From Eutreptiella sp. 'Long Island Sound 2002' (lineage: Eukaryota; Protista; Euglenida): a stretch of DNA of 64,000 bases. The DNA lies in NCBI GenBank assembly GCA_964036045.1, contig OZ038379.1, forward strand, positions 25,234,001 through 25,298,000. Reading direction: 5' to 3'. Under the pieces are notes generated by a model. That model had not been told where the DNA came from and made no database searches. It saw only the letters and a program-made list of their open reading frames with translations. Of this stretch, positions 12,701-53,943 are shown piece after piece (positions within the stretch are counted from its first letter, which is position 1; every line of letters starts with the position of its first letter). Position numbers and translations under genes: made by a program.

Positions 12701-12912
12701 CCATTTCCACTCTATAGTGTGGGGATATAAACATGGGCCCTGGAGTCAGAAGTCAGCAAAATATGAAAAAACTTGCATGCTAAACATTGCACAATATGCT
12801 AGACATGCTCATGCATGTGTCATAGCAGGGTGCACAATGCAAACTGTGCAGTTTGCGATGTGCATGGCTTATAGTGCAAGGTGCAAGGTGCGCAAGGTGC
12901 GCAAGGTGCATT

Positions 12913-12937
12913 GCTTAGTCGAACCAAGTGTCCAACC
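12913..12937 (+). repeat. Left terminal inverted repeat
   Basis: GCTTAGTCGAACCAAGTGTCCAACC, preceded by ATT. Confidence 0.9.
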
Positions 12938-13441
12938 GGAAAACCTGCCTCCGGCTATCTAAATCGTGACAGGCGAACCGTAAAAAGTCGAGCTACAGCA
13001 CCGAAATTTGAAGTAACAAAAAATTTTACCTCGATTTCCGGTCCGTGGGACACAAACTGAGGAAAAACGTAGCCGAAAAACAATAGTCAAAAGTGGGGTA
13101 TTTACTATGGGAAGGGAAGAAATGTGGTGGGAGAACCTCGAAATCGGGGGTAGGGGACATAGCTGATTTGTAGGGGGTAGGGTAGAGGGGAAAATTGAGT
13201 TGGACAATTGAAAACATTTTAAAAACCTCGTCGAAACCTGACAGTTATTGACAACGCATAAACGTCGGACGCAAAGCAGGCACGCAGAGCATAGGGCCAA
13301 AACCAATAAGGACAATTTCTGATGATCTCTTTCAAATGATGCCATCTGTGTAATCGGTGATTGTGCCGAGCAGCTCAAGGAGTGCTCACTTCAAGTAACG
13401 ATGAGCCTTTCAGCAGTGAAAGACATATTACTCCGGGCAAG

Positions 13442-13615
13442 ATGCTATCGAAATTTCGATAGCATAATATAGAAAGGAATCTGTCGTCGATGCCTATCGA
13501 AATCTCGATAGGATTAAAACATAAAAATCTGACGGGCGGGGGCCAATCGAAATTTCGATTGACGAAACCACAGCATCGGTGGGCATCGAAACACGGTTTC
13601 TATCGAAATTTCGAT
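13442..13615. promoter_or_regulatory. Left subterminal cluster of ATCGAAATTTCGAT palindromes (3 perfect, 1 with one mismatch)
   Basis: Cores at 13447, 13496 (mismatch), 13546 and 13602; the first extends to a 24-bp perfect palindrome (13442-13465). A binding-site role is inferred. Confidence 0.7.
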
Positions 13616-13682
13616 AGAGAAAGCAACAACAAATCACCAGGAGAAATAAAAAACGGAGACTAAAAACATGACATATACTCTA

Positions 13683-16600
13683 CTACTTCTTGGTGGTAGC
13701 CCGACTCGGATGAGAATCCTTGTGGGGCGAGCCCTTCTTCTTGGGCTGATCCGTAGCAGCCTTCGACAACTTGGCCTGAAAATCAGCAAAAGCAGACTTC
13801 TTCTTCTCTTTTTCCTTCTGTGCTCCTTCTTTCTTACCTTTCGCCGATTCCTTTGCCGCCTGCTTTGCTGCTTCCTTCGCCGCCTTTTCGGATTCCTTCT
13901 GCAGAGGAAAGGTAAATGAATGATAAAAGAAAGTGAAACATCAAGGTAGATATGCAAATATAAACAGACATACTTTCTCCTGAGCAGCCGCTTTTTTCTC
14001 TTCTTTCGTCAAGGCCTTGCTGACTTTTTTCTCAGCGTCCTTCGCTGCCTTCGCTTGACCCTTGACTGTGTCCTTGTCTTCCTCATCGTCCGAAGAATCT
14101 ATGGCAGAACAAATAGTGAAGGAAAGGAACAAGAAAAATTTGATGAGGTGTCTTTCAATGCATACCTTCGTCAGTGTCAGGAGCCTCAAGGGGATAACCC
14201 CGCTTCATCCGGTCCAGAACAAGATCCCATTGGATCGGTGGCAGGGCCTGTACCCTTTGAAGGCCAGCTGAAACTGTAAGAAAAAGTAGAAAAAATGAGT
14301 GAGGGAGTTGATTGTACTAGCGGAGGAAGGGAGGCCTTGAAACATACCATCATCAGCAAACTTCGTCAACTGTTCTTTGCTTGGAGCCGTGGACAAACCA
14401 AGAAGAACGGCAACGTTAACGTGAGAACGGAGACGAAGCCGGATGTTGCTCACCAGAACGGGAGATGTAGTCTGAACCGCAACCCAGTTGTACAAGCAAA
14501 ACAAAACTCATTCAAAGGCCATATGACTTCCTGGTGATGTCATGAGAGGCGATCACCTCCATAGAGACTCGTACAGCGACAGTATGGGTGGGCGGGTGGG
14601 ACCCCATCCCCCTGCACCCCCCCATGGGCGGGTGGGAGGGCCCTGTTATAGTTTATAAAATTCTGAATTGAACAGGGCATCATAATGAACAAAACAAAGT
14701 ATGGTGTACAACTACTGTTACTGGGGAAACAGCAGTTGTACAAGCAAAACAAAACTCATTCAAAGGCCATATGACTTCCTGGTGCGCGGTCTTTGTGGTT
14801 CAGTCAGCACCAAGCCATACTCCAGCGACCAAAGATAGTTTTATGGCACCCCGCGCAGTCACGACACCCCTAAGCACAGACACTGTGGGGAACGCCGCAG
14901 CGAACTCGCCACAGGCACTCCAGCCAACAGGCGTCCGGCCTGGGGCACATGGTCGCGTGGTCGTGGATAGGGACCTGTTGAAAAATGGCAAGAGGCCCCC
15001 AGCATCCCACCCTGCGAAGCGTTCCGCCAACACTAAGAGACAGCCCCCACAGGACACTGTGCAAGCTGTCTGTCCATAGCAGTGCGCCCGTTGGGCAAAT
15101 CTGCAATCCATACAGGGCAAGGGAGGGCGGGAAAAGCCTGCAGGGAACGAAACCTGTCCCAAGCTGCTAACCCCGCCGCAGCGAAGTCGCCGCCGAAATC
15201 ACCGTCAATACGGGAGAAACAGTCAGCCGGGTTGAGATCACCTGGGACCCATTCGAGAAAAACAGTCGAAGCAGACCTCTGGAGCAGGTAAAAGGCTCTG
15301 CGCAGGTTCCTGTTATGCCTCTTTAAACCAGACCGGGCGCGCATCCCCGCCAATTGGCCATGGGAGGAGGCATTGTCCCCAACCATCCTGAAGACGGGCC
15401 AGCCCACATTGACGATGAAATTAAGGCCCTGGACCAGGGAGTCCAACTCTGCCTCCTGCTGCGTCAAAACCTCGATCCCACAGCGAAAAACCCTGCCCCC
15501 CAGCGCTGGACCCCAGAGACCCACCTTGAAGCGGTCCAAATCGAAGGCCGCGTCGACAAAAACTAGGCCTCTGCCCGCAGAAGAGGGGGAATCGACACGT
15601 CTCGGGGTCCAACCACGTCGTGACATGACAAGGCAATGCAGGAGGCTATGCACCAGCTTCAAGGGGGTGGAAGGCAAAAAGGAAGAGCCCCACATAACAT
15701 GTGACCACCAGCCAGCCAAAAAGGGGCAAGCGCCCACCTGGGGTCTCAGGGCCCATGAAAAACGGCCTATAACCCGCCGAGCGAGCTTCCGGGATAAAGG
15801 CAGCAGCGCAACGCGTAACCACAGACCAAGCACGACGATCCATTGGTTGGAGACCACAAATACGCCCTGTCCCGCTCCCGACAGCACCAATTTCTTACCC
15901 AACCAGACAATGGACGGCACAGGCTCAAGGATGCTCTTGGGGCTGATGATCGCCCCTTCACGACCCAAAAGGTCACAGAGGCGCGCCGCCGCCGAACGCA
16001 CGTTGCCTGCCCTGAAACCCAAAACGAGAAAATCATCGAGGTAGTGCAAAACCAAGACCGAAACCAAGTCCAGCCCCTGTAGCAAGTAGCCTAACACGGT
16101 CTGGCAAATTACCGGAGAGTATTGCCATCCAAAGGGCAGGCAATTGAAGGCGAACGCCTGTCCGTCAATACTGACCCTGAAGGCCTGCCTGAAGTCATCT
16201 GGCAAACGCAAAGACCAGAATGCATTCTTTAAATCAACATGGCATGCCAGCAGGGGGGCCCCCTCAGGTGCCTCCAAACGCAGGTCATCGAGTGCGCGCA
16301 AAAAAGGGTCGCACAAATAGCGGCCCACGTCCTCAGAAAACGCAAGACACCCCTGGCCCGCCCGCAAGTAATGCAACTCAATGAGGAAAGCCAAATCTTC
16401 CACCACCGGGAGGGTGAAGGACGGCGGGCGGTTGGCATGCTGTTTATTGAACTGCACTAAATGCACTATCATAGATGCTTTCTCCGAATTTTTGGGAACT
16501 GGGAACAGCCAGCCATTAGGGGGAAGGTTGGAAGGGCACCGTGTCAAAACGCCATCCCGCACCAGGGCTCTAGCCATCACCAAACCCTCAAGGAATACTG

Positions 16601-19600
16601 CGGATGCCCGGTAACGTGCGCGTGGACACCGACAGGACATCATTTGGGGCCACCGCGTGCCAAATGAAATCCGGGATGCGAATGCTACCCACCTCCCCAA
16701 TCCCCCTTTCCAGAACATCCAGGGACAACCCCACCAGGATCGGCTTTGGAGACGTCGATTCACGAAAAACCACCGGCCAAAGGTCTGGCTCCAGGCGGTC
16801 AAGTGCTGCAATAGCCGCCTCCAGAAAATCAAAAACCCCCAAATCCCTCGCCACCATATTACCCCTCATCAATAATAATCGGATCCGGGACCTGACGAGA
16901 CCCCTGTCCGCGGGAGGCACCCTTAAGCCTTCGGACACGCGATCCAGCCATTGCTGTCCCCGGCGGGAGTTCAACAGGAGCTCCAAGCCCTCTTCCTCGA
17001 GACCGCAGGCGAAGAAGTCCAGACCCGCCGCCTCCTCCTCGCACAACGGGGGTGGCTCGCTGGTGGTCCCGGGCCCGACCCCTGAACTTCGCGGCGACGG
17101 ACTGGCGTTGGGGGGAACCGCTGGCCCCGACCGACGAGCCTGACTCGGGGGCTTGTGCGGTGGTGGAAGAGTCGGGGGCAACGCCCCCCCCCGTCGGACC
17201 TCTAGGAGGGGATTCTCGGGCCGGGGAGGGCGGATCTGTGCGGCGTCCTGTGGTCGATGCGGACCGCGGGGTAGCCACCGACGGACCCGAGGGGGTCGAC
17301 TGTCCTTGTTTCCGTGAAGGCTGGCGAGGCGGCGCGGGTCGTGAAGGTCGCTTGGCGGTCGGCGGCTGCATAGCGTCCCCGGAGTCGTCCCCTTCCACCA
17401 CTGCCTCGGAACCTCTGTCGCGCTTCGATCCGGTGGCCGGGAGCTTAGCGGGCCTCTCGTCCGGCAAGCAGAGACCCATGAGCGATGACGGCCAGAACTC
17501 GGCTGTGTCGGTGGTGATCCACTTGACCCCCTGACTCGTTGGCCACGGCAGGCGTGAGCTCGAGTGGAAGGTGAAGTCCTCTGGTGCCGCTGCGTAGAAG
17601 TGCGCCATGCGCACACTGGCCCAGCGTCCCCACCAGCATAGGTAGCGCCAGGGGAGGCCACGGAATCGGAGGAAGGCAGCCCCCGCGCGACGCCACGAGT
17701 GCCAGCGGTAAGCCGCGTAAGGGCTGCCTTGGAGCAGTCGGGCCATACCCTCTTCGAGGACGGCGGCTCTGTCGACCATGACGTCCCGTCCAGGAAACTG
17801 GCGCCGCAACCAGTGGGCCCATTCGCCCGCAAAACTGCCGAGGTCACGGGAAACCCAGCGCGAGTCCCGTTTGAGGCCCCAGAAAGCCACCGCCTTCCCC
17901 CGCAGGCCGGAGCGCCGGACAGACGCGATTTCCCCCACGCGGGTGAGGCTGCTGAAGGAGAGGACGGCGGTGGCGAAGACAGCCCAGTCCTCCGGAGTCT
18001 GGCAGGCCTCGGCCATGACCTGCAGAACATGGGGGCCTGCGTAAGGGCGGTCTCCCAGGGTAGCCACCGGCGCACGGGCGAGGCGCCAAAGGCGTTCCCA
18101 TCGTAACGGCGGTATCCATCCCATGACCCATACAGCGTGTAACGCCGACACGGCGCCCCGCAGCGTTGCGGGTCGATATCCCGACCGGAAGAGGAGGAGC
18201 AAAATACTCTCCGCCAGGCTCTGCGTGTCCCCCGCCGGTGCCGACCCATGGAAGAAAGCGATTCGTCGAAGGTGTGAACCATAGGAATTCCGTGTCCCCT
18301 CCTTCCAAGTGCTGATGAGGCATGTCTGGACGTCGTCCGCTGGATCCGCATACCCGAGCTCTCGCCACAAGGCCGCGATGGACCTCCAATCAATGGTTTT
18401 TCCGACCCACTCCGAAACCGGCGCCACTGCCACCGCCGGACTCGCCAGCTCCAAGATCGGTTCCAGCCCCCCCGGCGCGTCTCGTCACTCAAGAAAGGGA
18501 CACCTCCAGACCCAGTGACGGGTCACCTCACCACGAGCCTTGCAGGTCTTGCACGGGCCGACGGGATCCTCAGTCGTGCGCACCCACTCGTTTTTGTGAA
18601 TTTCGAAGAACTCCTCACCGTCGATGATCTTGAAACGCCGACGCATGGCCTTCTTCAGGCGTTTGCCCGCCTCCGACAGGCCCTCCTCCAGCCGAACATC
18701 CGACTCCTTTTGAGATCCAGAGGTTGATGAAGAACCAGACGTTCCCTCGTACCGCTCCTTGTAAGAGGCCGTCGCACAGAAAACGAGCGTCCACAGTGCC
18801 TGCACCAGGTTGTGAAACCTCTCAGAGACCTGCGCGGAGTCGGACGCGTCCATGCTGTCAGACCCATCTGGGTGTTTACGGTCGGTCCATGGCGTGTCGT
18901 CCCTCTTGTCCTCGTTAGTGAGGCCCAGCATGATCTCCTTAGCCGCGGCATCGGACATTTTGGGAACCATAGTGACTGTGGAGGCAGGGACGTTCTCGAA
19001 CTTGAGCAGTCGCACCAGGAGGAAGAGGGCACGATTAATCCACTGGGGATGGTTGGTAGCCGTGTCCGCATCGTGGATGGCCCTCAGTGACAATGCAGGA
19101 ACCTGCAACTGGTCCTTGGGTGGCGCCTCAGTGATGCTTTGGACCTTGGCGGTAAGGGACTTGATGAGCTGACCCTGGTCCTCCAGCAATTTAAGGATCG
19201 CAGGGTCAACTGGCCCAGGCGCCGGCACTGTCGGAGCTGCGGGGGAAGACTTTTTGAACGCCCCAGTGGCGAAGTCCAGCGTGACGTCCTCCAGGAGCAT
19301 GTAGCCCACCAAGCGGTCGAGGAACTCGTCCCGAGAACCCGTGAACGAGACGGTGGACGCGAAATTCTTGGCCCAGGCCTCCCCCTCGTCAGGCATACCC
19401 CGGAGTTCACGCATCAGGACCAGCTTGCGGCGCGTCCAGGACTTGGTATCCGCCCCAAGTCAAAAATCTCCATGGGCGTCCCCTTGGATGTAATCCGCGA
19501 ACGACAGTGCATCCTCCATTTTTATACTGCTGCTTGGCCACCAATTGAAAATCCACGAAGACAGAAGGAACAGCTCTCAAAGGAGTGGAAGCAGATCAGC

Positions 19601-21804
19601 TGTTCGGCCTGAGCAGCAAAAGAGACAGAACCTTCGTCTGAAGGCCCTGTTATAGTTTATAAAATTCTGAATTGAACAGGGCATCACAATGAACAAAACA
19701 AAGTATGGTGTACAACTACTGTTACTGGGGAAACAGCAGATCTCGTTGACGCTTTCTTCGATAACATCCAATTTGAGTTGATGCATGATGCAGCCGAGAA
19801 TCTCCGGAGGGAGTCGATTGTCATCTTCGGCCGGATTGTTGTACCGCTCGTCTTCGAAGGTAATGTACCTCGGGGGCTAAAAGAAAACCAATCGAAATTT
19901 CGATAGGAGGAAGTACGCAAAGCGAAGCTATCGAAATTTCGATAGAACACACCTTCCATTCTTTGATATGGCGCAATGTCAAGACAACGAGCTGGGAAGT
20001 TGCCATGGTGTAATTGCTGGTCAAAATCCCCTTATTGTACAACGCGATGTCCCTGGTATAGAACTCATCATCCGTTGACGCAGAGATGGCGTTCAGAACA
20101 ACGCAGACGTCAGGACGATCTCCAACCAAAAGCAGAACGGGCATCAACTCCTCATCAAGGACGTAAGACAACATCATTGGACACAAGGGGCGTCCCGCAG
20201 CGGTACCCTTCGGAATCTGATAGACGAGAATCCTCGGTTTCAGTCCAGAGATTGCAGCAGGGGTTGCACCGACAGCTGGCCCGATGCGGACTTCACAGAC
20301 TGCCTCACCGGGTTTGGTTTCACCAAGCGTTGCTGTCAGACATTCTGCCGACGTACTTTTGATGACAGGCTTCACCTTCGGTTGACTGAGAGATTCGCGG
20401 AGGGTCTTGAAATCCTCATCAGACCAGATCGGGGCCTTGCTGATGGTCGACCAAGGCGGCAAAGGATGCTGTTCGGTCCACTTCCAGCGCGGGATATGCA
20501 CCTTGAAATCCTGGGGTGACAGCGATGATGTTATTCTCTTCCACTCCGCAAAGTTTTTGCGAGACTCGTGCACGAAGGGGTTGTCCGGATGTTCCAAATG
20601 CCAAGAACAAGTTCGCTGTTCCCGAAGTCTCCGAACGAAGACCTTAAGCAATGGTGGCGTCAGATCACCTTCCAGCAGCCTTTCACAAAGAAGATACGTC
20701 CGATGATGACTGTGTGGTTTTAAATAACAATGACGCAAAGAAAGTAACTACCTGCGCAATCTCCGGCGGATACAATCCCTCAAGCGGCTTATAGTTGTTG
20801 AACACCGGGTTCAACTCGTCCTTCCCCTGAAGCTCGACGAGTTTCGGAATGATCGCTTTGTCCTCAGCTTGGGAAACGAAGCTTGCAAGCACCGTCCATC
20901 GCTTTGCCACTTCTTCGTCTGTGCCTTGCACGGCAGTGTATCCGGTCTTGTGCATCATTGTCAGCGTTGCGGCCTTTGGGGTAGGTACTCCTGCACATAG
21001 ATAATAAGGAAAGATTTGGTAACGGATGTAAATCCAGGTGGACTCGCTATCGAAATTTCGATAAACACCTTTGAGGTGACACTCGGTGAAGAGGCGATGA
21101 AGTCGTTGCTCAAACGTATGCTCAGATCCGCCATGGGATGCCCGGTTGTGATGCCCAGCGAGGGTTTGTCGAATCCAAAAGGGTGTGTCTGCACTCAAAA
21201 TCAACCCGTCGTACATCCTTGTCCAATGAGGCGGTGTCCACCGAGACACTTGAATGTAGCGCCTGACAAGGAAACGTACAATCGAAATTTCGATAGAAGG
21301 TACAATGTAATAGTCCGTAACGCGGAACGGTAATCAATCGAAATTTCGATAGCAAGGTATACCTGTTGGAAAGAGCAAACACTCGATGTATTTGTCCTTC
21401 GGTGGTGGAGCAACAAGGATGTCATCACCAACCAACGCTTTCTTCTTGGTAGTAACCGTTCTAGTTTGACCGAAGCTCATGTCGCGGTCCAGTTCGATCT
21501 TCGAGTAATGAACAAGTTCTCGGGACTCAACCCAATCGGCCAGATAGACCTGAGAAGTATCGTGCCATTCCTCAACCTCTGCGGATGTCGCTGGTCTGCT
21601 CTGCTCTGCAACGATCTTCTTCTTCTTCTTCGGTGGAGGGGACTGAGAGAAGAGCGCGGCCTCGGAAGTATCCGTGCGGGGGCTTGCAATGTCCGTTGAC
21701 TGCGAATACGTTTGTGATGGAGGCTCATCAGAGTCCCCTGCCGGCTGCGACCGCTTCTTCTTCTTGATCCGCTTCTTCGGTGACAAATGGGACTCACCGG
21801 ACAT
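13683..21804 (-). CDS. Transposon accessory gene B: 8 exons, 771 aa, unknown function, interrupted in exon 5 by the YR retrotransposon
   Basis: Exons 21804-21383, 21262-21069, 20990-20774, 20709-19953, 19876-19737 joined to 14484-14348, 14273-14166, 14098-13974 and 13898-13683. All seven introns are GT-AG (64-120 nt) with consistent phases; 2316 nt in total with no internal stop. Lys-rich NLS-like N-terminus and acidic plus K/A/E-rich C-terminus. The intron 1 and intron 3 donors were chosen among alternatives to keep frame. Confidence 0.8.
15033..16832 (-). CDS. Reverse transcriptase and RNase H of the YR retrotransposon; N-terminus apparently frameshifted near 16610
   Basis: Motifs HVDLKNAFW, CLPFGWQYSP, HYLDDFL and WLGK; RNase H VFVDAA, QEAELDS, GDNASS and WVPGDLNPADCFSR. 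Confidence 0.93.
   Translation of the reverse strand: MIFWRRLLQHLTAWSQTFGRWFFVNRRLQSRSWWGCPWMFWKGGLGRWVAFASRISFGTRWPQMMSCRCPRARYRASAVFLEGLVMARALVRDGVLTRCPSNLPPNGWLFPVPKNSEKASMIVHLVQFNKQHANRPPSFTLPVVEDLAFLIELHYLRAGQGCLAFSEDVGRYLCDPFLRALDDLRLEAPEGAPLLACHVDLKNAFWSLRLPDDFRQAFRVSIDGQAFAFNCLPFGWQYSPVICQTVLGYLLQGLDLVSVLVLHYLDDFLVLGFRAGNVRSAAARLCDLLGREGAIISPKSILEPVPSIVWLGKKLVLSGAGQGVFVVSNQWIVVLGLWLRVALLPLSRKLARRVIGRFSWALRPQVGACPFLAGWWSHVMWGSSFLPSTPLKLVHSLLHCLVMSRRGWTPRRVDSPSSAGRGLVFVDAAFDLDRFKVGLWGPALGGRVFRCGIEVLTQQEAELDSLVQGLNFIVNVGWPVFRMVGDNASSHGQLAGMRARSGLKRHNRNLRRAFYLLQRSASTVFLEWVPGDLNPADCFSRIDGDFGGDFAAAGLAAWDRFRSLQAFPALPCPVWIADLPNGRTAMDRQLAQCPVGAVS
16859..18484 (-). CDS. Tyrosine recombinase
   Basis: TRNSYGSHL core-binding region, SLTRVGEI (catalytic R), HSWRRAGA (HxxR), WGRWAS...FYA (W and catalytic Y). 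In frame with gag after one TGA. Confidence 0.92.
   Translation of the reverse strand, partial: RDAPGGLEPILELASPAVAVAPVSEWVGKTIDWRSIAALWRELGYADPADDVQTCLISTWKEGTRNSYGSHLRRIAFFHGSAPAGDTQSLAESILLLLFRSGYRPATLRGAVSALHAVWVMGWIPPLRWERLWRLARAPVATLGDRPYAGPHVLQVMAEACQTPEDWAVFATAVLSFSSLTRVGEIASVRRSGLRGKAVAFWGLKRDSRWVSRDLGSFAGEWAHWLRRQFPGRDVMVDRAAVLEEGMARLLQGSPYAAYRWHSWRRAGAAFLRFRGLPWRYLCWWGRWASVRMAHFYAAAPEDFTFHSSSRLPWPTSQGVKWITTDTAEFWPSSLMGLCLPDERPAKLPATGSKRDRGSEAVVEGDDSGDAMQPPTAKRPSRPAPPRQPSRKQGQSTPSGPSVATPRSASTTGRRTDPPSPARESPPRGPTGGGVAPDSSTTAQAPESGSSVGASGSPQRQSVAAKFRGRARDHQRATPVVRGGGGGSGLLRLRSRGRGLGAPVELPPGTAMAGSRVRRLKGASRGQGSRQVPDPIIIDEG
18485..19414 (-). CDS. Gag-like protein with C-terminal CCHC-type knuckle
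   Basis: 309-aa first ORF of the element ending CKTCKARGEVTRHWVWRCPFLE (C-X2-C-X8-H-X4-C). Confidence 0.8.
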   Translation of the reverse strand: MRELRGMPDEGEAWAKNFASTVSFTGSRDEFLDRLVGYMLLEDVTLDFATGAFKKSSPAAPTVPAPGPVDPAILKLLEDQGQLIKSLTAKVQSITEAPPKDQLQVPALSLRAIHDADTATNHPQWINRALFLLVRLLKFENVPASTVTMVPKMSDAAAKEIMLGLTNEDKRDDTPWTDRKHPDGSDSMDASDSAQVSERFHNLVQALWTLVFCATASYKERYEGTSGSSSTSGSQKESDVRLEEGLSEAGKRLKKAMRRRFKIIDGEEFFEIHKNEWVRTTEDPVGPCKTCKARGEVTRHWVWRCPFLE

Positions 21805-22257
21805 TGGGCAAATGTACTGAGGGTGATTAACGAGGTAAAACCTGTGCGCAAACGAGCTGAGGAACTCGCAAATGGACGATTGGGGCGACGAAAGTGCTAC
21901 TTTGCTTGTGAGACCGAATATTTCTGTCAAGGTTTTTCAGTACCTCTAAATATGAAGCGATAAGCTCATATTCATCGGTTACATTCCACTTAGAGTCCAA
22001 ATGTCGTAAATTCAATCGAAATTTCGATTGAGGTAGTAGTCTATCGAAATTTCGATAGACCGCGGACGACGTACTAAGAAACGTTGTCTGATTAGGTTTA
22101 CATAGACTTCGAAGGAGATGAAATAGATCGGATAAGCATAAAATAGATCGAAGGAGCATTGAACAAAGCAAAGAAAGGGTATTACATGATGCAACGATTC
22201 GATCAAGTACTTACGCACTGAAATTGCAACATACAAACGTGCAATCGAAATTTCGAT
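19891..22257. promoter_or_regulatory. Internal ATCGAAATTTCGAT palindromes in gene B introns and the intergenic gap (8 perfect copies)
   Basis: Intron 4: 19891 and 19930. Intron 2: 21049. Intron 1: 21281 and 21337. Intergenic: 22015, 22043 and 22244. Confidence 0.7.
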
Positions 22258-22271
22258 AAGGGACTCAAATC

Positions 22272-24365
22272 TTAATGTTCAGCGGCAAGAAGCCTCGGAC
22301 CTTCGGCCTCATCAACTATATGTTCATCGTCCTCATCAGGTTCGCTCTCGCTGGATGGCGGGTCAAAGAGGGCAGGAGGCGGGCCACGTGGCTGTCTACG
22401 AAGGCGTCCCTGGTATCTGTCCGGAGGGGGATGTGCTTCAAGCGACCGTGTTATTTGTAGTTTTTTCCAAGCTTTGACATAGGAAACACGATCAGCAAGA
22501 GGTGTTCTAGGAATGTGGGTCATATATTGATGGATTTCCTCTGTTACATCTCTGTGTTTGCACATTAACTTGAGAGCCCGAATCATGCACATATCAAGTA
22601 GGGGGGAATCAACAGTTAGGTCAAGTGGAGGAAGGTAACTGGGATCCCATACAGGATCAGGGGTAACTGTCCTGTGTTTGGACTGGAACCGTGTGAACGG
22701 CGTGTTAATATCCGTAGCCCGTTGAACAAATGAACGTATCGTGATAACAAAATGTGTAACCAGATGTGGCTGGACCGAAGATCTTAGAACCCGTTCTTTC
22801 TGCAAGGGGGGAAGGGTGCAGTAAACATCACTTGCGCGAGAAAGATCTGTGACGTGTGGCAGCAGGGTGAGAGCATGTCCCAAACGTGACAAAGAGGCTT
22901 CACAACTTTCCTCAACGAACAGACAACCAGGGACCATGTCATACCACAACTGCCATGTACCGAGTGCAGTGCATAACGTCCGAACATACTCAATCTTGGG
23001 AGCATGCTTTTGTGTAAGGGAGACCAGTAAAAGCAGACAATGTTCAAGTACAGTGCGTGCGGTCGTCCCAGAATCCAGAGCAGCCCCGGCCCAAGTACAT
23101 TCTCGAACCCCATACCCAATGGCCCAGAGTGCAGGTGTGAAAACATACAACAGACTGTACAGGCACTGAATCTTTTGATATGCCACAGTGTTTTCAAGAT
23201 TCATTGGTCGTCTGAGGGTCGACAATCTATCTCTAGCTTCGGTGATAAGACCTTTCAACACGTTGCCCGCTAACAAAATACCGGCAAAAACCTTTTCCAT
23301 GTATATGAGCTTCCGATGACAAGGAATGCTAGTCCGCACCGTGATAAACGGTTTGAGCAGCCAAGAAATAACGGGAAAGAAACGCCTGAAAGTAATGTGT
23401 ACACAGTATTTGTACGGATGCCAAATGCCATAAAGCAGCGGAATGCGTTCCAAATGAGACCGGTAGTCCAGACTTCTGAGCTTCGCACCGTACATGAAAC
23501 GCAATACCGATGCATGTATTTTCATGTCGACCAGCAAAGGCAAATCCCGGCCCGTATGAATCTGTATGCGACGCATCATCTCAATTAACTGCAGCAGCTC
23601 AGTGTTTGAGCTTGTTCGACACTCGTCCAGCAACATAGGTTTCCAAATTTGTGGATACACGATACCCCTGGCGATGTCGAGTGGCGCACGGATGAAATGT
23701 GCCTGTAACGTCCCATCTGTAACAGCTGCAATAGTGTTCAGTAGACCCCTGCTGGAGGTCCGAATGCATCTCATGACACCTGGCAGTCTGAAAACTATGC
23801 GGCGCAATGTTAGATGTCCAGGAAATCGGGGCAGCAAGATTGTAAAGAGCACGGCTACGGCAGAACAGTCAAGATGTCCGGGCGGGCCATCGGGGTTCTG
23901 TAGGAATCGTTTTCTGAAAAAATTGTCCATCCAAATGCCAACAGAAGCAATGCTCATTGCATTCCAGAGATCCATCGCTGCTGCAACACCAGATTCCTGC
24001 AGAGTCGGTATTCGAGGTGGAACTATGCCAAACCTTGCTAGTAACTTCCGTTCGCGCTGCGAAACAGTAATGTCCAGAGCCGAGCGAAAAGCCAGGGGTG
24101 CCGCACGCAGGTGCAGCACACGCCAGATGTTGAAGAGCTCCTGCTGGAGTACGCTGAGCCATCTCGGCAAAGGTGTACGGTTTCTGTTTGCGACCACCTG
24201 CTCAAATGTCTGGCGGCGGCGTTTGGTTATCCTTATTCCAAAGACAAATTCAACAAATCGCCTTGACGTACCGCCTTCGCAAGCATCTTCAATAATTTGG
24301 CGTCCATTCTCCCAAGAGTGCGAAGCGAGGAATCCTCGCACGTAGGCAATGAAATGGCCATCCAT
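22272..24365 (-). CDS. Putative DDE transposase, Academ/DUF6589-like, 697 aa
   Basis: Intact ORF inside the TIRs with WMDNF, PLLVDMKIH, LLYGIWHPYKY and a candidate E in FVEESCEA. Spacing resembles the DN...D...GxxH...E pattern I recall for Academ-group transposases; family call from memory, not from a search. Confidence 0.65.
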   Translation of the reverse strand: MDGHFIAYVRGFLASHSWENGRQIIEDACEGGTSRRFVEFVFGIRITKRRRQTFEQVVANRNRTPLPRWLSVLQQELFNIWRVLHLRAAPLAFRSALDITVSQRERKLLARFGIVPPRIPTLQESGVAAAMDLWNAMSIASVGIWMDNFFRKRFLQNPDGPPGHLDCSAVAVLFTILLPRFPGHLTLRRIVFRLPGVMRCIRTSSRGLLNTIAAVTDGTLQAHFIRAPLDIARGIVYPQIWKPMLLDECRTSSNTELLQLIEMMRRIQIHTGRDLPLLVDMKIHASVLRFMYGAKLRSLDYRSHLERIPLLYGIWHPYKYCVHITFRRFFPVISWLLKPFITVRTSIPCHRKLIYMEKVFAGILLAGNVLKGLITEARDRLSTLRRPMNLENTVAYQKIQCLYSLLYVFTPALWAIGYGVRECTWAGAALDSGTTARTVLEHCLLLLVSLTQKHAPKIEYVRTLCTALGTWQLWYDMVPGCLFVEESCEASLSRLGHALTLLPHVTDLSRASDVYCTLPPLQKERVLRSSVQPHLVTHFVITIRSFVQRATDINTPFTRFQSKHRTVTPDPVWDPSYLPPLDLTVDSPLLDMCMIRALKLMCKHRDVTEEIHQYMTHIPRTPLADRVSYVKAWKKLQITRSLEAHPPPDRYQGRLRRQPRGPPPALFDPPSSESEPDEDDEHIVDEAEGPRLLAAEH

Positions 24366-24452
24366 CTTTGGCGTACATGAAACTCGTACATGAAGTAGAA
24401 GACAACAAATAGTCTAGCATGTAAAATCTTTGAGATCCGTCAGAATGTCACT

Positions 24453-24903
24453 ATCGAAAATTCGATTGGAGTTTAAACAGCCTATGCTTTACAGGGTACT
24501 GATTCCTCTAGCGGCTATCTAAATTTCGATTGGACATTCCTATCGAAATTTCGATAGGAATTGAATTCCTTTTCTGTCGAATGCTCCTATCGAAATTTTG
24601 ATTCGAGATGCTCCTATCGAAATTTCGATTGGTTTTAGAAATAAATCCATTGTGTAGACATCTCCATCGGATAAACATTCATATGTGTTTGATTTCTTTT
24701 ACCTCTTATTTCTTTTACCTTTATTTTTCTACAAGTTGTAATTTAAAATTCATATACTACTGTAGTACAACTATGTTCCGGTAAACCTTCGTGAAAGATT
24801 TTCATGGTTTGGTCTGTGAATGTCGTTAAAGACTTCCAATCGAAATTTCGATTGATCCATGCAAGGCAAATTGTCACGTAGCTTCGACAATCGAAATTTC
24901 GAT
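24453..24903. promoter_or_regulatory. Right subterminal/upstream cluster of palindromes (4 perfect, 3 with one mismatch)
   Basis: Perfect at 24542, 24616, 24839 and 24890; one mismatch at 24453, 24517 and 24589. Lies upstream of the transposase ATG. Confidence 0.7.
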
Positions 24904-25281
24904 AGCATCATTGCTTTTTTCTTCTAATTTTCACATACACAGACTATCAGGAGTCGGGTGGACAAACAGTTTGATATAGCTAATCGTGCAACCGAAGTTT
25001 CGATACATGGGACTTCCTGCCTACATTGTGAACTTCCCTGAGTCTCATTGCTATTCGAACAACAAACAACATGCAGCAATTCAAATGAAACACACTGAAG
25101 CGCAAATATGCATGAGCGTGGTAACACGGTGGTACACAACTGCGCATGTACTTGCACAACCAGTGTCTTTTTAGGACATTTCTTCTTTCCCGGGATTGGC
25201 TTCATGTTCTTTAACCGTGTTTTTCGCACCGTGTGACACGTCCCTTTTTTGTTCCAATTTCCGGTGACAGGGGCCCATTTT

Positions 25282-25306
25282 GGGTGGACACTTGGTTCGT
25301 CTAAGC
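25282..25306 (-). repeat. Right terminal inverted repeat
   Basis: Reverse complement GCTTAGACGAACCAAGTGTCCACCC, followed by ATT on the plus strand. Confidence 0.9.
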
Positions 25307-28115
25307 ATTGTGCAAGATCCTTTTCCACCTCAGTCCCAATACCCAAATCTAGTTAGGTCACCTCCTTTGCCACCCGATCTGGCACCCTTTTGGCGACACT
25401 TTATGGCTTTATGACAACACTACGGCTGTACATAGCTGCTGCCCAAGGCACGATCGCCCACTTGTCAACAATTTCTCCTAAAGGTATCTTGTGTCACCCA
25501 AAATTGACAAATTGACACCTGGTCCATGAATTCATGGAGATGAAGGAATCACCCAACTGGATCGAGACAATTACATTGTGCCATAAACGCAGTAGGTGTC
25601 GGTTGATTCTCCATCATCAGAATCCAATATCCGCCAACAAGAAAGACTGAAGATGGGTATCAATGGGGTGAAAGGGGGTGAAAATGAAAGCCATTGCACA
25701 CACCCCATAATAAGAAACCCCGAAATAGTTGGTACTAAACAACAAAAATGCCCCTGCTACTTGTCTCTAGTGCAGTGCAGCATGCAAAGTGCACACAACA
25801 TGCTGTGCACCAGTTTCAATGGCCTGTGTCCTATGGAAATTCAGACACGAAATCCATCCTTACCTTTTGACGTAAATCCATCCTCTGCCGATGTGTCTTC
25901 TAAGGTATTGCAGCATTGCAGTCCATCACATCCCTGTCCTACAAAGTACAACAACAATCAATCTCCTCAGACTGCAATCCATCTCATCCACCATCAAAAG
26001 TGTTGACCTCCGAAAAAACCAAATATGAGTACGCCGGGTCCGGATTATGGGCCATTTTTCATGCACACCAGGAAAGCTGTCCCAGGGGAGGGGATGGGAT
26101 TCACATGGCGCCTGTCTCCACAGGGCGTTGCATGGAGAAACACGGGGATGGGTGGTTTCTACATTTGCAAGGGCTCTCTTGTTTATGAAAGGGCACCAGA
26201 GCAGAGCACCATCAGTACCATGCAGCAGCAACGCCTCAAGGCGCCGAATTGGGTACGCAATGGGTCATGGCAAAGGAGCAGGGCAGTCTTTGCACAAGGC
26301 CTCTCGATGCATCACAATACTTGGCACCGAATAAATTAATTACCAAATGAAAAACGGTCTGGACATTGAATCTACCTTGGGCAAGGGCATCTCTTGCACA
26401 AGAAGGGGGGTTACCTCCTTTCATACCATCACCATAGCACGCACACAGCGCCTCACATAAGCTCAATGTTCCATAGCACAACACTCCTAAATACATAAAT
26501 GGTGACAAACAAAAATTAGCTTTGCCATACCAGGCTGTTGCCAGGTGCATCACGGTAACGGCCCCATCCCTCAATGAGGAATTGTGGTATCACCTTGCTG
26601 CAAAAGGTAACATTTATGAATTGTATTCCACACTCGCAGCATGCGATGGAGCTTCAAATTTCTCCTGTGGCCTGTGGCATTATGTGGGTTGATGATAGGT
26701 TGATGAAACCCTTCCATTTCCGCAATAATGTACACATGACGCTTCCATGGACCAAAAGCTACACACAGCATCCATGGAAGACAGACATATCATATTGTTT
26801 GAGGGTTCGGAGAGCAACGCAACAGTGCTGATGTTCGGTGCAGCAGAATTGTTGGGTTATCCCTGCGCTTTGTTTGAGTTGAAGCTTCCAGCATACCTCA
26901 TTGTCAGAAGCACTGCAAAGTGTTACAGTGGTAATGTTGGTGGTATTGTTAGTGGGCGGGGAACACTGTCAAGGCACCTGTTCCTCCAGCCACACAGGCC
27001 AATTGACCATGTGGCGACCTAAATGTGCAAGTTTGCAAATGGTCCACAGACATATGAACTTGGCTCTGCTCTGGGACAAGCTGCCAAACCTGAAGGGACT
27101 GTTTGCCCGGCGCGCTACTTGTGTATTAACAATCCTGACAACCCCAGATTTACCCTCCTAAAGCGCATCTGCACCCACACACACCCCTGATCTCTGCAAC
27201 GAAGGTGGGGGCAAAAGTAGGGGCGTAGAAAAGTCGAGCCGGACCCTAAGCAGATCCTCAGTACTTCGGTGTACATAGACTTGGATTGCCAGAGAAAAGT
27301 GGCGGACTCGTTACGCCCGAAACTCAACACAGCGCCAGCTGCTGTCGGCTATCCAGCAACCGGAACGGACTGCTGGTCTACCACCCAAAGCCGGCAGGAT
27401 TCAGGCGGCTGATACCGCGGGGTGCGTCAGACAGGAGTGCGGGGGATGTGTTCTTTGCTGGAGACAATCGGTGTGGGTTGCCTTTCGCTTTGGTTAGACA
27501 AGTGGTGAGACGTATTGAAGTGAGTCCTTTGCAGCGCGTGATTGGACCCCCGGAGATCCGTGTCCCAAATCGAGTTCGTCACACTCCCCTGAGGAGCAGA
27601 GTGACTCGCCTTTACACAGCAACAGAGCGTAGGGTGACGGCTGCAGAACTCTGGCCTTCCACAAGGAAATGCTGTGTCGTCGGGGGCAGCACGTGGTGGC
27701 CCAAGAGCCTGGGGGTGAACCCCCCCCCCTACACACATCGCTACTGATAACAATGTCAGCCACCCCCTCCCGAACCATCTACACACACAACACCCCATGT
27801 GTACATATCACCCGCCCCTATATCCCAGAACAATGTCCCCTCAAATCCACATCCCCCCCCCTATACTTACATACATCAACCCCCATCCACCCACGCCATG
27901 TGCGCGGGGGAGATTCCTGTGGCCATCATCTGACCACAGGCATGCCACGACATGTTTGGCTGGTGAGGCAGTCCAACCCCTAAGCCACCCCCCCCCAACT
28001 TCGCTTCCGGCCCCAGAGACACCCCCTCGCAACATCGACCGAGCTAAACCCCCAGAGAAGTTTCCTCTTCAGGGGCTCCGCCTCTTGGGGGGCGCCAAAG
28101 GCAACCCTCCCTCGC

Positions 28116-34453: not shown

Positions 34454-37400
34454 TCACCTCGCAGAGGTTGTTAGATCAAAGCCAGGCAGGCGTATATATG
34501 GGGAAAACGCCACATACCCCCCCATTTTGGCCTTTTTGGGCCTATTCGCGTACCCTACCCCAAGGGGTTGAATTGTTGGTTTAACCCCTTGTAAAATCAT
34601 TATTTTGTCCAATAAACGCATCCCCCAATGAGTTTTTGGTCCGGACCCCCCTAGACCCCCCCCACTTGAAACCCACTTTTTTGAGGTTTTGAGGGAGGGG
34701 GGGGGGTCAAAAAATGACCCCCCCATTTTTTAGGTCGAAAATCATGAATCTTTTGGTTTTTTTTTGATTTTGAGCCGAAAAAGTGTTTCCGGGTCCCGAC
34801 TCCATAGGGTTTGTATGGGGCGGAGTGGGACGAGCGCTTATGCAGTTTATGCACTTTTCAGCCATTTTTGGTATGTTGGCGGTTTTGGCGACCTCGGTAA
34901 ACCCGTGGTACCCACTTTGAGGGGTGCGAGTGGGGATGTTGTGACAGTATCTGCCTCCTAGTATACGGAAGGACGTTTTTTGCAGTCTCTAGCCTTGCTT
35001 AGGGCCGTTCACAACCCGTGCCAAAAACGCAAAATGGCTCTTTCCACCAATAATGGCTTAGTGAATGGGATGGTACACAACCTGCTTATGCAGTTTTTTA
35101 CCCTGGACAGCTCAAAAATCGAAGTTTCCGAAACTTACTTTTTTGACATCGTGATCACCTAAAATGACCATCCAAGCTATGTAAAGCATGTTTTAGGCCG
35201 TATTTACGTGTTTTTCACCCAATTTGGGTATTAGGTCCGGGGGGGGGGGGGGCTTCCAAGGGATTGGTACACAACCTGCTTATGCACTTTTTCACTATGG
35301 ACAGCTCAAAAATCGAAGTTTTCGAAACTTGTTTTTTTGATGTTGTGACCACTTAAAATGACCATTCAAGCTATGTAAAGCATGTTTTAGGCCGTATTTA
35401 CGTGTTTTTCACCCAATTTGGGTATTAGGTCCGGGGGGGGGGGGGGGGCTTCCAAGGGATTGGTACACAACCTGCTTATGCACTTTTTCACTATGGACAG
35501 CTCAAAAATCGAAGTTTTCGAAACTTGTTTTTTTTGATGTTGTCATCACCTAAAATGACCATCCAATTTATGTAAAGCATGTTTTAGGCCGTATTTACGT
35601 GTTTTTCACCCTATTTGGGTATTGGGTTGGGGGGGGGGTCTCCCAAGGGATTGGTACACAACCTGCTTATGCAGTTTTTCACCTTGGACAGCTCAAAAAT
35701 CGAAGTTTTTGAAACTTGTTTTTTTGACATCGTGATCACCTAAAATGACCATCCAAGGTATGTAAAGCATGTTTTAGGCCGTATTTACATGTTTTTCACC
35801 CAATTTTGGGTATTTGGGTATTACCTCCGGGGGGGGGGGTCTCCCAAGGGATTGGTACACAACCTGCTTATGCAGTTTTTCACCTTGGACAGCTCAAAAA
35901 TCGAAGTTTTTGAAACTTGTTTTTTTGATATTGTCATCACCCAAAATGACCATTCAAGCAATGTAAAGCATGTTTTAGGCTGTATTTACGTGTTTGTAAC
36001 CTTATTTGGGTATTGGGGGGGGGGTCTCCTAGGGGATAAGTACACAACCTGCTTGTGCAGTTTTTCACCGTGGAGAGCTCAAAAATCGAAGTTTTCGAAA
36101 CTTGTTTTTTTGATACCGTGATCACCTAAAATGACCATCCAAGGTATGTAAAGCATGTTTTAGGCCGTATTTATGTAGTTTCCACCCTATTTTGGGTACG
36201 TGTTGCTCGGTGTAGATTCTCTGCGAGGTGGACTTGCCGCAGGCAATAGAATCACCTCGCAGAGGTTGTTAGATCAAAGCCAGGCAGGCGTATATATGGG
36301 GAAAACGCCACATACCCCCCCATTTTGGCCTTTTTGGGCCTATTCGCGTACCCTACCCCAAGGGGTTGAATTGTTAGTTTAACCCCTTGTAAAATCATTA
36401 TTTTGTCCAATAAACGCATCCCCCAATGAGTTTTTGGTCCGGACCCCCCCAGACCCCCCCCCACTTGAAACCCACTTTTTTCAGGTTTTGAGGGAGGGGG
36501 GGGGTGGGGGGGTGGGGGGGGGGTCAAAAAATGACCCCCCCTTTTTTTGGGTCGAAAATCATGAATCTTTTGGTTTTTTTCGATTTTGAGCCGAAGAAGT
36601 GTTTCCGGGTCCCGACTCCATAGGGTTTGTATGGGGCGGACTGGGACGAGCGCTTATGCAGTTTATGCACTTTTCAGCCATTTTTGGTATGTTGGCGGTT
36701 TTGGCGACCTCGGTGACCCCGTGGTACCCACTTTGAGGGGTGCGAGTGGGGATGTTGTGACAGTATATGCATGCTAGGATACGCAAGGACGTTTTTTGCA
36801 GTCTCTAGCCTTGCTTAGGGCCGTTCACAACCCGTGCCAAAGACGCAAAATGGCTCTTTCCACCAATAATGGCCTAGTGAATGGGCCGGTACACAACCTG
36901 CTTATGCAGTTTTTCACCCCGGACAGCTCAAAAATGGAAGTTTTCGAAACTTCTTTTTTTGATATTGTGACCACCTAAAATGACCATCCAAGCTATGTAA
37001 AGCATGTTTTAGGCCGTATTTACGTGTTTTTCACCCCATTTGGGTATTATGTCCGGGGGGGGGGGGTCTCCCAAGGGATTGGTACACAACCTGCTTATGC
37101 AGTTTTTCACCCCGGACAGCTCAAAAATGGAAGTTTTTGAAACTTGTTTTTTTTGATATTGTGACCACCCAAAATGACCATCCAAGGTATGTAAAGCATG
37201 TTTTAGGCCGTATTTACGTGTTTTTCACCCTATTTGGGTATCAGGTCGGGGGGGGGGGGGGGCTCCTAGGGGATTGGTACACAACCTGCTTATGCAGCTT
37301 TTCACCCCGGACAGCTCAAAAATCGAAGTTTTCGAAACTTGTTTTTGTGATATTGTGATCACCTAAAATGACCATCCAAGGTATGTAAAGCATGTTTTAG

Positions 37401-37879
37401 GCCGTATTTACGTGTTTTTCACCCCATTTGGGTATTAGGTCCAGGGGGGGGGGTCTCCCAAGGGATTGGTACACAACCTGCTTATGCAGTTTTTCACCCC
37501 GGACAGCTCAAAAATGGAAGTTTTTGAAACTTGTTTTTCTGATATTCTGACCACCTAAAATGATCATCCAAGGTATGTAAAGCATTTTTTAGGCCGTATG
37601 TACATCTTTTTCACCCTATTTGGGTATTAGGTCCCGGGGGTGGGGGGGGGGGTCTCCCAAGGGATTGGTACACAACTTGCTAGTGCAGTTTTTCACCCTG
37701 GGCAGCTCAAAAATCGAAGTTTTTGAAACTTGTTTTTTTGATACCGTGATCACCTAAAATGATCATCCAAGGTATGTAAAGCATGTTTTAGCCCGTATTT
37801 ATGTAGTCTCCACCCTATTTGGGGTGTGTGTTGCTCGCGGTAGATTCTCTGCGAGGTGGACTTGCCGAAGGCAATAGAA
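34454..37879 (+). mobile_element. Head-to-tail dimer (34454-36251 and 36252-37879) of a non-autonomous Helitron2/Helentron-like element
   Basis: Each copy starts TCACCTCGCAGAG and ends with the subterminal inverse CTCTGCGAGGTG, a TTGCC-NNN-GGCAA hairpin and TAGAA. Inserted at A|T with no TSD; the two copies share a ~600-bp header. Confidence 0.72.
35060..37800. repeat. ~193-bp tandem repeats inside the Helitron2-like copies (6 and 5 units)
   Basis: GGTACACAACCTGCTTATGC-like anchor at about 35072, 35266, 35462, 35653, 35854 and 36039, then 36888, 37081, 37277, 37468 and 37665. Confidence 0.95.
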
Positions 37880-53917: not shown

Positions 53918-53943
53918 TCCTTCGGAGTGTCTATTTTTTTTCG
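53918..53943 (+). other. Euglenid spliced-leader relic
   Basis: TCCTTCGGAGTGTCTATTTTTTTTCG matches the Euglena SL as I recall it (ACTTTCTGAGTGTCTATTTTTTTTCG) at 23/26, with the 3-prime 19 nt perfect. Confidence 0.8.

Follow-up and report, generated by a model that had tools for sequence, protein, structure and literature searches.

Several DNA transposons are known, or have been proposed, to recognize their own DNA by means of an accessory protein and a set of short sites. Giant Plavaka elements of red algae (Bostrychia) carry PAG3, whose product is described as a ParB-like DNA-binding part (HHpred E = 0.29) joined to a putative 2-oxoglutarate (2OG) oxygenase, with inverted-repeat arrays alongside (Petroll et al. 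2025, bioRxiv 10.1101/2025.02.11.637652; cited in PMC12477816 as Current Biology 2025). A gene combining a ParB-like part with a DNA methyltransferase is reported from a 21.5-kb Ectocarpus Sola1 element (Sola1-1), where it is suggested that such proteins may form a new class of accessory proteins that bind their own element (PMC12477816). In the passages of both algal accounts available to us, the authors propose that the accessory protein binds to the transposon that encodes it and perhaps also modifies it (bioRxiv 10.1101/2025.02.11.637652; PMC12477816). In Arabidopsis, the corresponding passages of Hosaka et al. (2017, PMC5735166) describe VANC as binding short motifs gathered in the non-coding parts of its own VANDAL, and these motifs differ between related families, resulting in family-specific self-recognition. 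The present analysis concerns a DNA transposon of the euglenid Eutreptiella sp. 'Long Island Sound 2002', which lies in a 64,000-nucleotide stretch of genomic DNA (the window; GenBank assembly GCA_964036045.1, contig OZ038379.1, positions 25,234,001 to 25,298,000) and which encodes a transposase and an accessory gene, here termed gene B. Both genes are accompanied by many copies of one short palindrome. To our knowledge, private-code self-recognition by transposons is known experimentally from essentially one system, VANDAL/VANC, and for algae it has only been proposed.

With at most one mismatch allowed, the palindrome ATCGAAATTTCGAT occurs 19 times in the window, as 15 exact and four single-mismatch sites that span positions 13447–24903. 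These are the counts and coordinates given in a preliminary description of the locus, and 100 dinucleotide-preserving shuffles of the window contain no such site, the number expected by chance being 0. The 18-bp consensus C-W-ATCGAAATTTCGAT-W-G that had been proposed around the 14-bp palindrome is upheld by the flanking letters and fits nearly all sites, the 5' flank being ct or ca at 19 of 19 sites and the 3' flank being ag, tg or aa. The distribution of the sites along the element could also be reproduced. Four sites (13447, 13496, 13546 and 13602; cluster at 13447–13615) lie downstream of gene B, just 3' of its stop codon and 533–700 bp from the left end of the element, while five are located in the three short introns of gene B. 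Another three (22015, 22043 and 22244; cluster at 22015–22257) are intergenic, 15–260 bp downstream of the transposase stop codon and 211–453 bp upstream of the gene B ATG, and the remaining seven (24453, 24517, 24542, 24589, 24616, 24839 and 24890; cluster at 24453–24903) lie upstream of the transposase ATG, where three of the seven palindromes are ancestrally degenerate. Relaxing the search to two or three mismatches adds one further site in the element, a degenerate twentieth copy with two mismatches (ACCGAAGTTTCGAT, 24991–25004), and a three-mismatch look-alike at 53128, which is the only site outside the element. Up to three mismatches, there is no palindrome in the retroelement nested within gene B (14488–19739) and none, apart from the look-alike, in the remaining ~52 kb of the window, in agreement with the earlier account. 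The transposase open reading frame and the gene B exons of the window element likewise contain no site. The earlier statement that the palindrome is restricted to non-coding DNA holds for the family of the window element (the window family) but not for the wider lineage, as relatives carry palindromes inside the transposase reading frame.

The locus had been presented as a candidate for an undescribed system. This can no longer be maintained, since the available passages on algal transposons already report, in 2025, ParB-like accessory genes beside inverted-repeat arrays. The likeness to the PAG3 and Sola1 elements, as these passages describe them, consists of a ParB-like accessory gene and inverted-repeat arrays on one DNA transposon, although the ParB-likeness is weak here. 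In contrast, the algal elements measure 15–30 kb, belong to EnSpm/Plavaka, Mutator, Zisupton or Sola1 and reside in red or brown algae, whereas the window element is a 7.1-kb, two-gene euglenid element with an unclassified DDE transposase. The algal arrays are described as tandem and located beside the gene; the window element has dispersed sites that extend into introns and, in relatives, into coding loops. Furthermore, in the algal proteins the ParB-like part is joined either to a 2OG oxygenase (PAG3) or to a DNA methyltransferase (Ectocarpus and green-algal proteins), but no such domain is detectable in gene B (no 2OG oxygenase or DNA methyltransferase family match in any gene B exon; the model of the middle part has a predicted local distance difference test score, pLDDT, of 33). 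The analogy with VANDAL/VANC drawn previously is apt as a functional comparison. Self-motifs in non-coding DNA and their turnover between families are shared with that system, the reader of the motifs being a proposed one in the present case. However, VANDALs belong to the Mutator-like elements, VANC and gene B are not related, and the motifs bound by VANC are short sequences without palindromic symmetry that often stand in tandem; neither gene of the window element gives a Mutator- or VANC-related Pfam match, and the resemblance is functional only. Selection on the sites, turnover of palindromes and sites in coding loops do not appear in the passages of the published algal and VANDAL accounts that were searched, and a limited literature search found no description of such euglenid elements.

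The palindrome is private to the window transposon family and essentially absent elsewhere in the genome. A genome-wide count, which the preliminary description had named as a check on this point, gives 595 exact ATCGAAATTTCGAT sites in the 2.28-Gb genome versus 31 for a reversed control pattern, and the right end of the element is present in about 55 copies. Confinement to the family follows from the 201-Mb contig C1, since all 43 of its exact sites fall within four copies of the transposon, in four clusters that each end exactly where one right-end copy starts.

The sites are also under selection. Variation was analyzed in 28 distinct copies aligned over window positions 20862–25305. Departures from the consensus amount to 0.9% in the motif and 0.6% in the pair of letters bordering it on either side, as compared to 2.7%, or three times the motif value, at other non-coding letters. 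Within the transposase gene, the corresponding values are 1.25%, 0.85% and 2.7% for codon positions 1, 2 and 3, the motif being close to position 2. When the same number of 14-bp windows was drawn from the non-coding background, the observed value was reached in 0.3% of permutations (p = 0.003), indicating that the motif is better conserved than neighboring non-coding DNA, a comparison that had likewise been suggested at the outset. Variants were further divided into those common to at least two copies, which have been carried through rounds of transposition, and private ones, which arose after insertion. Shared variants are depleted 2.4-fold in the motif (0.046 versus 0.109 per site in the background; odds ratio 0.39, Fisher p = 0.006), while private variants show no significant depletion (0.128 versus 0.165 per site; p = 0.20). 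The same pattern of shared-variant depletion is seen at codon positions 1 and 2 relative to position 3. Because shared but not private variants are depleted, selection acts on propagating copies; copies that lost sites left fewer descendants, which amounts to purifying selection at the level of the propagating element. At CpG dinucleotides, deviation is 1.05% in the motif versus 6.3% in other non-coding DNA and 6.1% at third codon positions. As a separate observation, CpGs in the latter two classes vary about 2.6 times more than other positions (2.4%), and this hypermutability suggests germ-line cytosine methylation of the transposon family in this alga.

Palindrome arrays whose sequence is specific to each family are a conserved feature of the transposase lineage. 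Relatives with transposases at 25–35% identity were drawn from two freshwater-looking metagenomes and from another assembly containing the window family, and seven of them possess palindromes of their own, 17–24 bp in length. Locus L011 has TTTGCGTAATTACGCAAA, with 27 core sites within 9.9 kb, and L012 has AACGCGTAATTACGCGTT, with 18 sites within 6.4 kb, in which the core is that of L011 and the outer letters differ. A 24-bp palindrome, TTGTCCGCGAA-NN-TTCGCGGACAA, is found in L045, a 20-bp palindrome, TTGCGCGCC-NN-GGCGCGCAA, in L047 and a 22-bp palindrome, AGTGCGCGAGGCCTCGCGCACT, in L051, while L013 has the palindrome CTGTCAGAATTCTGACAG and L050 a site resembling GCGAAATTTCGC. Closer relatives (L049, 85% identical, and L009, of a 90% subfamily) retain the motif of the window. 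Counts of 6-bp half-sites are 16 for the window element, 24 for L011, 11 for L012, 6 for L045 and 5 for L051, with at most 1 in shuffled sequence; the counts for L047 (1) and L013 (2) are low, and both arrays were recognized by direct inspection.

In some of these relatives, the palindrome is situated within the transposase gene itself. L011 and L012 each carry their own version at the same codon position, encoding SLRNYAN and STRNYAF, respectively. In L047 (1252–1961), the 20-bp palindrome occurs three to four times in the transposase reading frame and is read each time as RAQARN; these sites occupy the same variable loop as the in-frame palindromes of L011 and L012, and the loop is about 50 residues longer. 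L045 has one palindrome near the transposase C-terminus. Because the in-frame variants change the encoded residues, the DNA site is kept at the expense of the protein.

Gene B homologues adjoin the transposase in the metagenomic relatives L011, L012 and L045, and the first intron of gene B bears palindromes across this distance: the window family and L011 have two each and L012 has one, every element with its own sequence. The encoded proteins may be related to a known class of DNA-binding domain. Dimers of the ParB family (ParB-parS, Noc-NBS, KorB-OB) bind multi-copy palindromes of 14–16 bp and then spread or clamp over neighboring DNA, and a GQ.R box followed by a hydrophobic strand and then GQHR is the type of signature found in ParB, sulfiredoxin and DGQHR domains. 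Exon 1 of gene B contains the motif LD.D...GQ.R.V, and exon 2 contains YFIISGQHR in L011 and L012 versus FKCLGGQHA in the window family. Accessory proteins of the relatives read ...VLDKELTHGQVRKV...LTVWKEQG, followed by an intron and then ...KYYIISGQHRFVAA...PDWTQRF. A three-sequence profile of exon 2, in which the row for the window was mis-framed, gave sulfiredoxin as the first match among solved structures (E = 0.098) and the ParB-like nuclease-fold protein 1vk1 at E = 1.1, while an exon-1 profile had no match to solved structures. A language-model search placed ParB_N and DUF6551 clusters at 0.88. Taken together, the gene B product is considered to carry a weak ParB/sulfiredoxin-like signature. 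The 18-bp size and the symmetry of the window site fit the ParB model, but the element differs from ParB-parS in having no ParA partner (no ParA ATPase was found in the element, which holds two genes only) and no ParB_N match at the level of hidden Markov models, in its missing signature Arg (that of the CTP-binding GxxR box of ParB) and in its eukaryotic nuclear setting.

It is proposed that the palindrome probably functions as a private address label of the family, that is, as a cis-acting site for a dimeric protein encoded by the element, with gene B as the likeliest source of the reader. For gene B itself, we put the chances of its product being the reader at about even. The occurrence of one sequence at all sites of an element implies a common sequence-specific reader rather than mere self-complementarity. 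A dimeric, element-encoded reader is suggested by the single shared palindrome of 17–24 bp, by its turnover between families while the layout is kept and by its absence outside the family. In this layout, sites precede both genes, occupy introns and follow gene B and, in relatives, interrupt the long transposase reading frame. The earlier view of the palindromes as cis-sites for such a protein is thus supported in part, through selection, family-specific palindromes and placement in intron 1. Binding by a protein and the identity of the reader as gene B are what we infer from these patterns, and the effect of binding is inferred from published analogues. In the proposed mechanism, a dimeric element-encoded DNA-binding protein would recognize the 18-bp palindrome, and gene B protein held at many sites would mark or coat the element's own DNA, loading possibly as ParB does at parS or as VANC does on the non-coding motifs of its own VANDAL. 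The bound protein could then promote expression or mobility of the element, for instance by countering host silencing; possible effects include anti-silencing, as for VANDAL/VANC, self-modification, as proposed for the algal ParB fusions, and ParB-like bridging. A wider and more doubtful proposal is that a widespread, unnamed lineage of eukaryotic DDE transposons, represented by ~1,800 transposases in public data, labels and recognizes its own DNA in nuclear chromatin in the manner of ParB-parS. In each family, a rapidly evolving reader derived from ParB/sulfiredoxin would be matched to a palindrome of 17–24 bp, placed every 1–2 kb and extending into introns and permissive loops of the transposase gene, and the reader would coat or clamp the whole element and so shield it from host silencing or organize its transposition.

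Several findings weigh against an address label read by the gene B protein. No array was found within the 0.3–1.3 kb of flank examined in the relatives L046, L048 and L014. Part of the low CpG decay in the motif could be due to shielding of the sites from methylation and not to selection; such shielding would itself imply binding. The three introns of gene B are predicted from GT-AG borders and continuity of the reading frame. In the corrected exon-2 alignment, the sulfiredoxin match falls to E = 0.93, below a probably spurious match to ribosomal protein S19e, and Pfam and NCBIfam scans of all gene B exon pieces from the window, L005, L011 and L012 give nothing credible at E up to 5–10. In the intact copies of the window family, the signature Arg is replaced by Ala (GGQHA), and a ParB-type nucleotide pocket may be absent for this reason. 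Finally, AlphaFold modeling of the central part of gene B (P0165:1-336, 336 amino acids) gave an unusable structure, with a pLDDT of 33.

The main alternative reader is the N-terminal region of the transposase. In this explanation, which we consider unlikely, the palindromes are transposase-binding sites that act as internal enhancers or in subterminal pairing of the ends, comparable to the En/Spm TnpA sites, the Ac subterminal hexamers or the internal activating sequence of phage Mu, and gene B has another job. Selection on propagating copies is what a requirement for transposition predicts, and the predicted helical N-terminal region (residues 1–139) before the catalytic core could bind DNA. 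Moreover, a search of the terminal 400–530 bp of the element revealed no further subterminal repeats, and transposase and palindrome always occur together in relatives, with gene B traced in three only. The placement of the sites argues otherwise. The preliminary description had named a left subterminal cluster and likened the sites to those of En/Spm, but the nearest good site is ~400–530 bp from either end of the element, and the terminal 300–530 bp are devoid of sites at both ends. Such empty ends, together with a scatter through the interior, introns and coding loops, would be unusual for end recognition, and the published parallels, in the passages available, tie arrays of this type to the accessory gene. 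En/Spm and Ac share with the window element the presence of many short motifs on the transposon; in En/Spm and Ac, an element-encoded protein reads these motifs and activity depends on them, while for the window element such a reader is proposed. However, their motifs are non-palindromic and lie within a few hundred bp of the ends, in contrast to the palindromic sites described here, and En/Spm has CACTA termini and 3-bp duplications rather than CTTAG termini and 5-bp duplications. Because the sites are evenly spread, at spacings of a few hundred to about 2,000 bp, and missing from the ends, marking or coating of the element by a reader such as the gene B protein fits them better than end recognition does.

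Binding of the palindromes by a host factor (a transcription factor, insulator protein or silencing factor) is improbable. Several sites do lie in putative promoter regions of both genes, and the element-encoded origin of the reader is itself a proposal. On the other hand, related elements have different palindromes, including some from the same genome or assembly (L013, L050 and L051), so that many different host factors would be needed. The motif is essentially restricted to element copies, and no host regulon uses it. Marginally less probable still is the idea that the sites act as structures, either as RNA hairpins affecting splicing or processing or as DNA cruciforms. Each site is a perfect palindrome that could form a 6–9 bp hairpin (-6 to -16 kcal/mol), 5 of the 19 sites are in very short introns, every site is inside or near the probable transcribed span, and the flank changes between L011 and L012 are symmetric. 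For a structure, however, self-complementarity would suffice, yet ~19 sites share one sequence and compensated variants are rare among copies; in addition, sites reach 540 bp upstream of the transposase ATG, and stems of 7 bp are weak. Least probable is a neutral origin, in which a palindromic unit spread in an ancestor by slippage or duplication and was then inherited, for although unit-sized indels of 28 and 56 bp occur around 22015–22043 and 21281–21337 and repair can generate palindromes, shared variants are depleted at motif letters as they are at non-synonymous positions, the architecture persists at 25–35% protein identity with a new palindrome in each relative, and sites are retained within coding sequence.

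The euglenid element, 7 kb long and with only two genes, is a small and clean test case for an address label read by an element-encoded protein. It has a single 18-bp palindrome at about 19 sites, its family numbers about 55 copies, a population-genetic signal indicates that the sites matter for propagation, and its relatives have exchanged the code. If gene B were the reader, site loading of the ParB type would extend to eukaryotic chromatin, and matched protein–site pairs would become available for sequence-specific targeting. Should the wider proposal be true, DNA loading of the ParB type would be demonstrated for the first time in a eukaryotic nucleus, and the system would provide a module for sequence-specific targeting that is both compact and programmable. 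The element is also relevant to the origin and persistence of very short, repeat-filled introns and to the evasion of silencing by transposons in a CpG-hypermutable genome.

Gene B (13683–21804, minus strand), the candidate palindrome reader, is a multi-exon gene located downstream of the transposase on the same strand. Its first intron (21263–21362, minus strand, 100 nt) contains two palindromes (21281 and 21337) and splits the ParB/sulfiredoxin-like signature region. The second (20991–21068, minus strand, 78 nt) contains one palindrome (21049) and the third (19877–19952, minus strand, 76 nt) two (19891 and 19930). Each of these three gaps is bounded by canonical GT-AG dinucleotides, and the reading frames on its two sides join; the borders of intron 3 are AAG|GTGTGT ... 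TTTTAG|CCC, and its removal joins EWK to PPRY. No splice joints were found in the RNA-labelled estuary metatranscriptome, in which coverage consists of scattered contigs at 90–99% identity, and other runs behave like DNA. In the window, gene B carries three lesions: the nested retroelement, a deletion of 5 bp at 20689 and another, of 54 nt, near 21238. All DNA runs and the family protein P0165 retain the CCTGT that is lost at 20689, and the 54-nt deletion removes ...QHAFETTQDVRKKYEEEGK... from exon 2. Because its gene B is broken three times, the window element would depend on gene B protein from other copies.

The intact gene B exons of the family are represented by P0162 and P0165. The end of exon 1 in intact copies reads ...IELDRDMSFGQTRTV...ECLLFPTG and exon 2 starts ATFKCLGGQHAFE...PPHWTRMY, and the longer exon 2 of L005, L010, L017 and L019–L021 contains ...FKCLGGQHAF.... 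Canonical splicing and these intact copies give FKCLGGQHAF, and FWIRQTLAGHHNRA was rejected as the exon 2 signature. An earlier model of gene B with 8 exons and 771 amino acids probably includes a false intron bridging a frameshift. Homologue searches with pieces of gene B returned copies from the same species only, and an atlas search with P0165 gave no usable match.

The transposon as a whole spans 12914–25305 (12.4 kb, or 7.14 kb without the nested retroelement), with both genes on the minus strand. Other copies, at 93–97% identity, align across 12914–25305 but lack 14488–19739. This interval is occupied by the nested retroelement (minus strand), which contains reverse transcriptase and RNase H-like open reading frames, is inserted in gene B and is not part of the system. 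The 24-bp terminal inverted repeats have the form CTTAG(W)CGAACCAAGTGTCCACCC; the left repeat (12914–12937, plus strand) reads CTTAG(T)CGAACCAAGTGTCCA(A)CC, and the right repeat (25282–25305, minus strand) matches it at 22 of 24 bases. The base preceding CTTAG differs among copies and is therefore flanking DNA, placing the start of the element at the C of CTTAG. The element is bounded by the target-site duplication CATTG, at 12909–12913 on the left and 25306–25310 on the right. Duplications of 5 bp were also identified in L010 (AAGCA) and in L005 and L019 (CAATT), and L007 has 5 bp plus one extra base. A 3-bp ATT duplication was considered and rejected, as one variable flanking base had been counted into the terminal inverted repeat; the true length is 5 bp. 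The flanks of about 30 copies suggest a weak preference for CAAT/ATTG-like targets.

The transposase gene (22272–24365, minus strand) is an intact open reading frame of 697 amino acids with a predicted RNase H-fold DDE core and a helical insertion domain. It has no Pfam match. The AlphaFold model (pLDDT 72) shows the RNase H-like core with the helical insertion, and the closest solved structures are those of P-element transposase (Z 9.6), Hermes (Z 8.6), Tn5 (Z 8.5) and RAG1 (Z 7.7), the best matches among solved structures all being transposases or integrases. The best matches among predicted structures and in language-model searches are clusters that partly carry DUF6589 (TM 0.54, feature score 0.93), yet PF20231 (DUF6589) was not matched by any of 17 transposase family members scanned. 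The candidate catalytic residues D147 (WxDN), D280 (LLVD) and E485–489 (EExCE) are conserved. Terminal inverted repeats, a target-site duplication of fixed length and an RNase H-like core together mark a DDE cut-and-paste transposon, and all three are present. The 697-residue protein is judged to be a true DDE transposase, belonging to a group without a name. The element does not fall within EnSpm/Plavaka, Mutator, Zisupton or Sola1, as there is no Pfam transposase match, the termini are CTTAG rather than CACTA and the duplication is 5 bp. Elements of the Academ superfamily, as described in Repbase, have target-site duplications of 3–4 bp, and an Academ label is unsupported given the 5-bp duplication.

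The transposase family is large and unannotated, with 1782 representative relatives at E up to 0.001. A first look at the genome gives 9469 preliminary candidates for this family. Among them is a second, more abundant family that has open frames of 672 amino acids in many near-identical copies scoring ~677 bits each (e.g. C1:9500820-9502751 and C3:14240355-14242289). The scan of metagenome contigs produced one short locus only, L014. In the estuary metatranscriptome (run X1), short contigs are 90–99% similar to 19740–25305, non-coding parts included, which places the family or a close relative in the estuary habitat and is no proof of transcription.

Two further features of the window lie outside the transposon. 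A search for the dinoflagellate spliced leader gave no match, while positions 53923–53943 match the euglenid spliced-leader sequence CGGAGTGTCTATTTTTTTTCG in genomic DNA with one mismatch, in keeping with the window being of euglenid origin. A tandem satellite of ~194–201-bp units is present at 35067–36198 (5.9 copies) and 36888–37823 (4.8 copies). Each unit contains a 15-bp palindrome, AAGTTTTCGAAACTT, between A and T runs; this palindrome is repeated in tandem and is apparently unrelated to the transposon.

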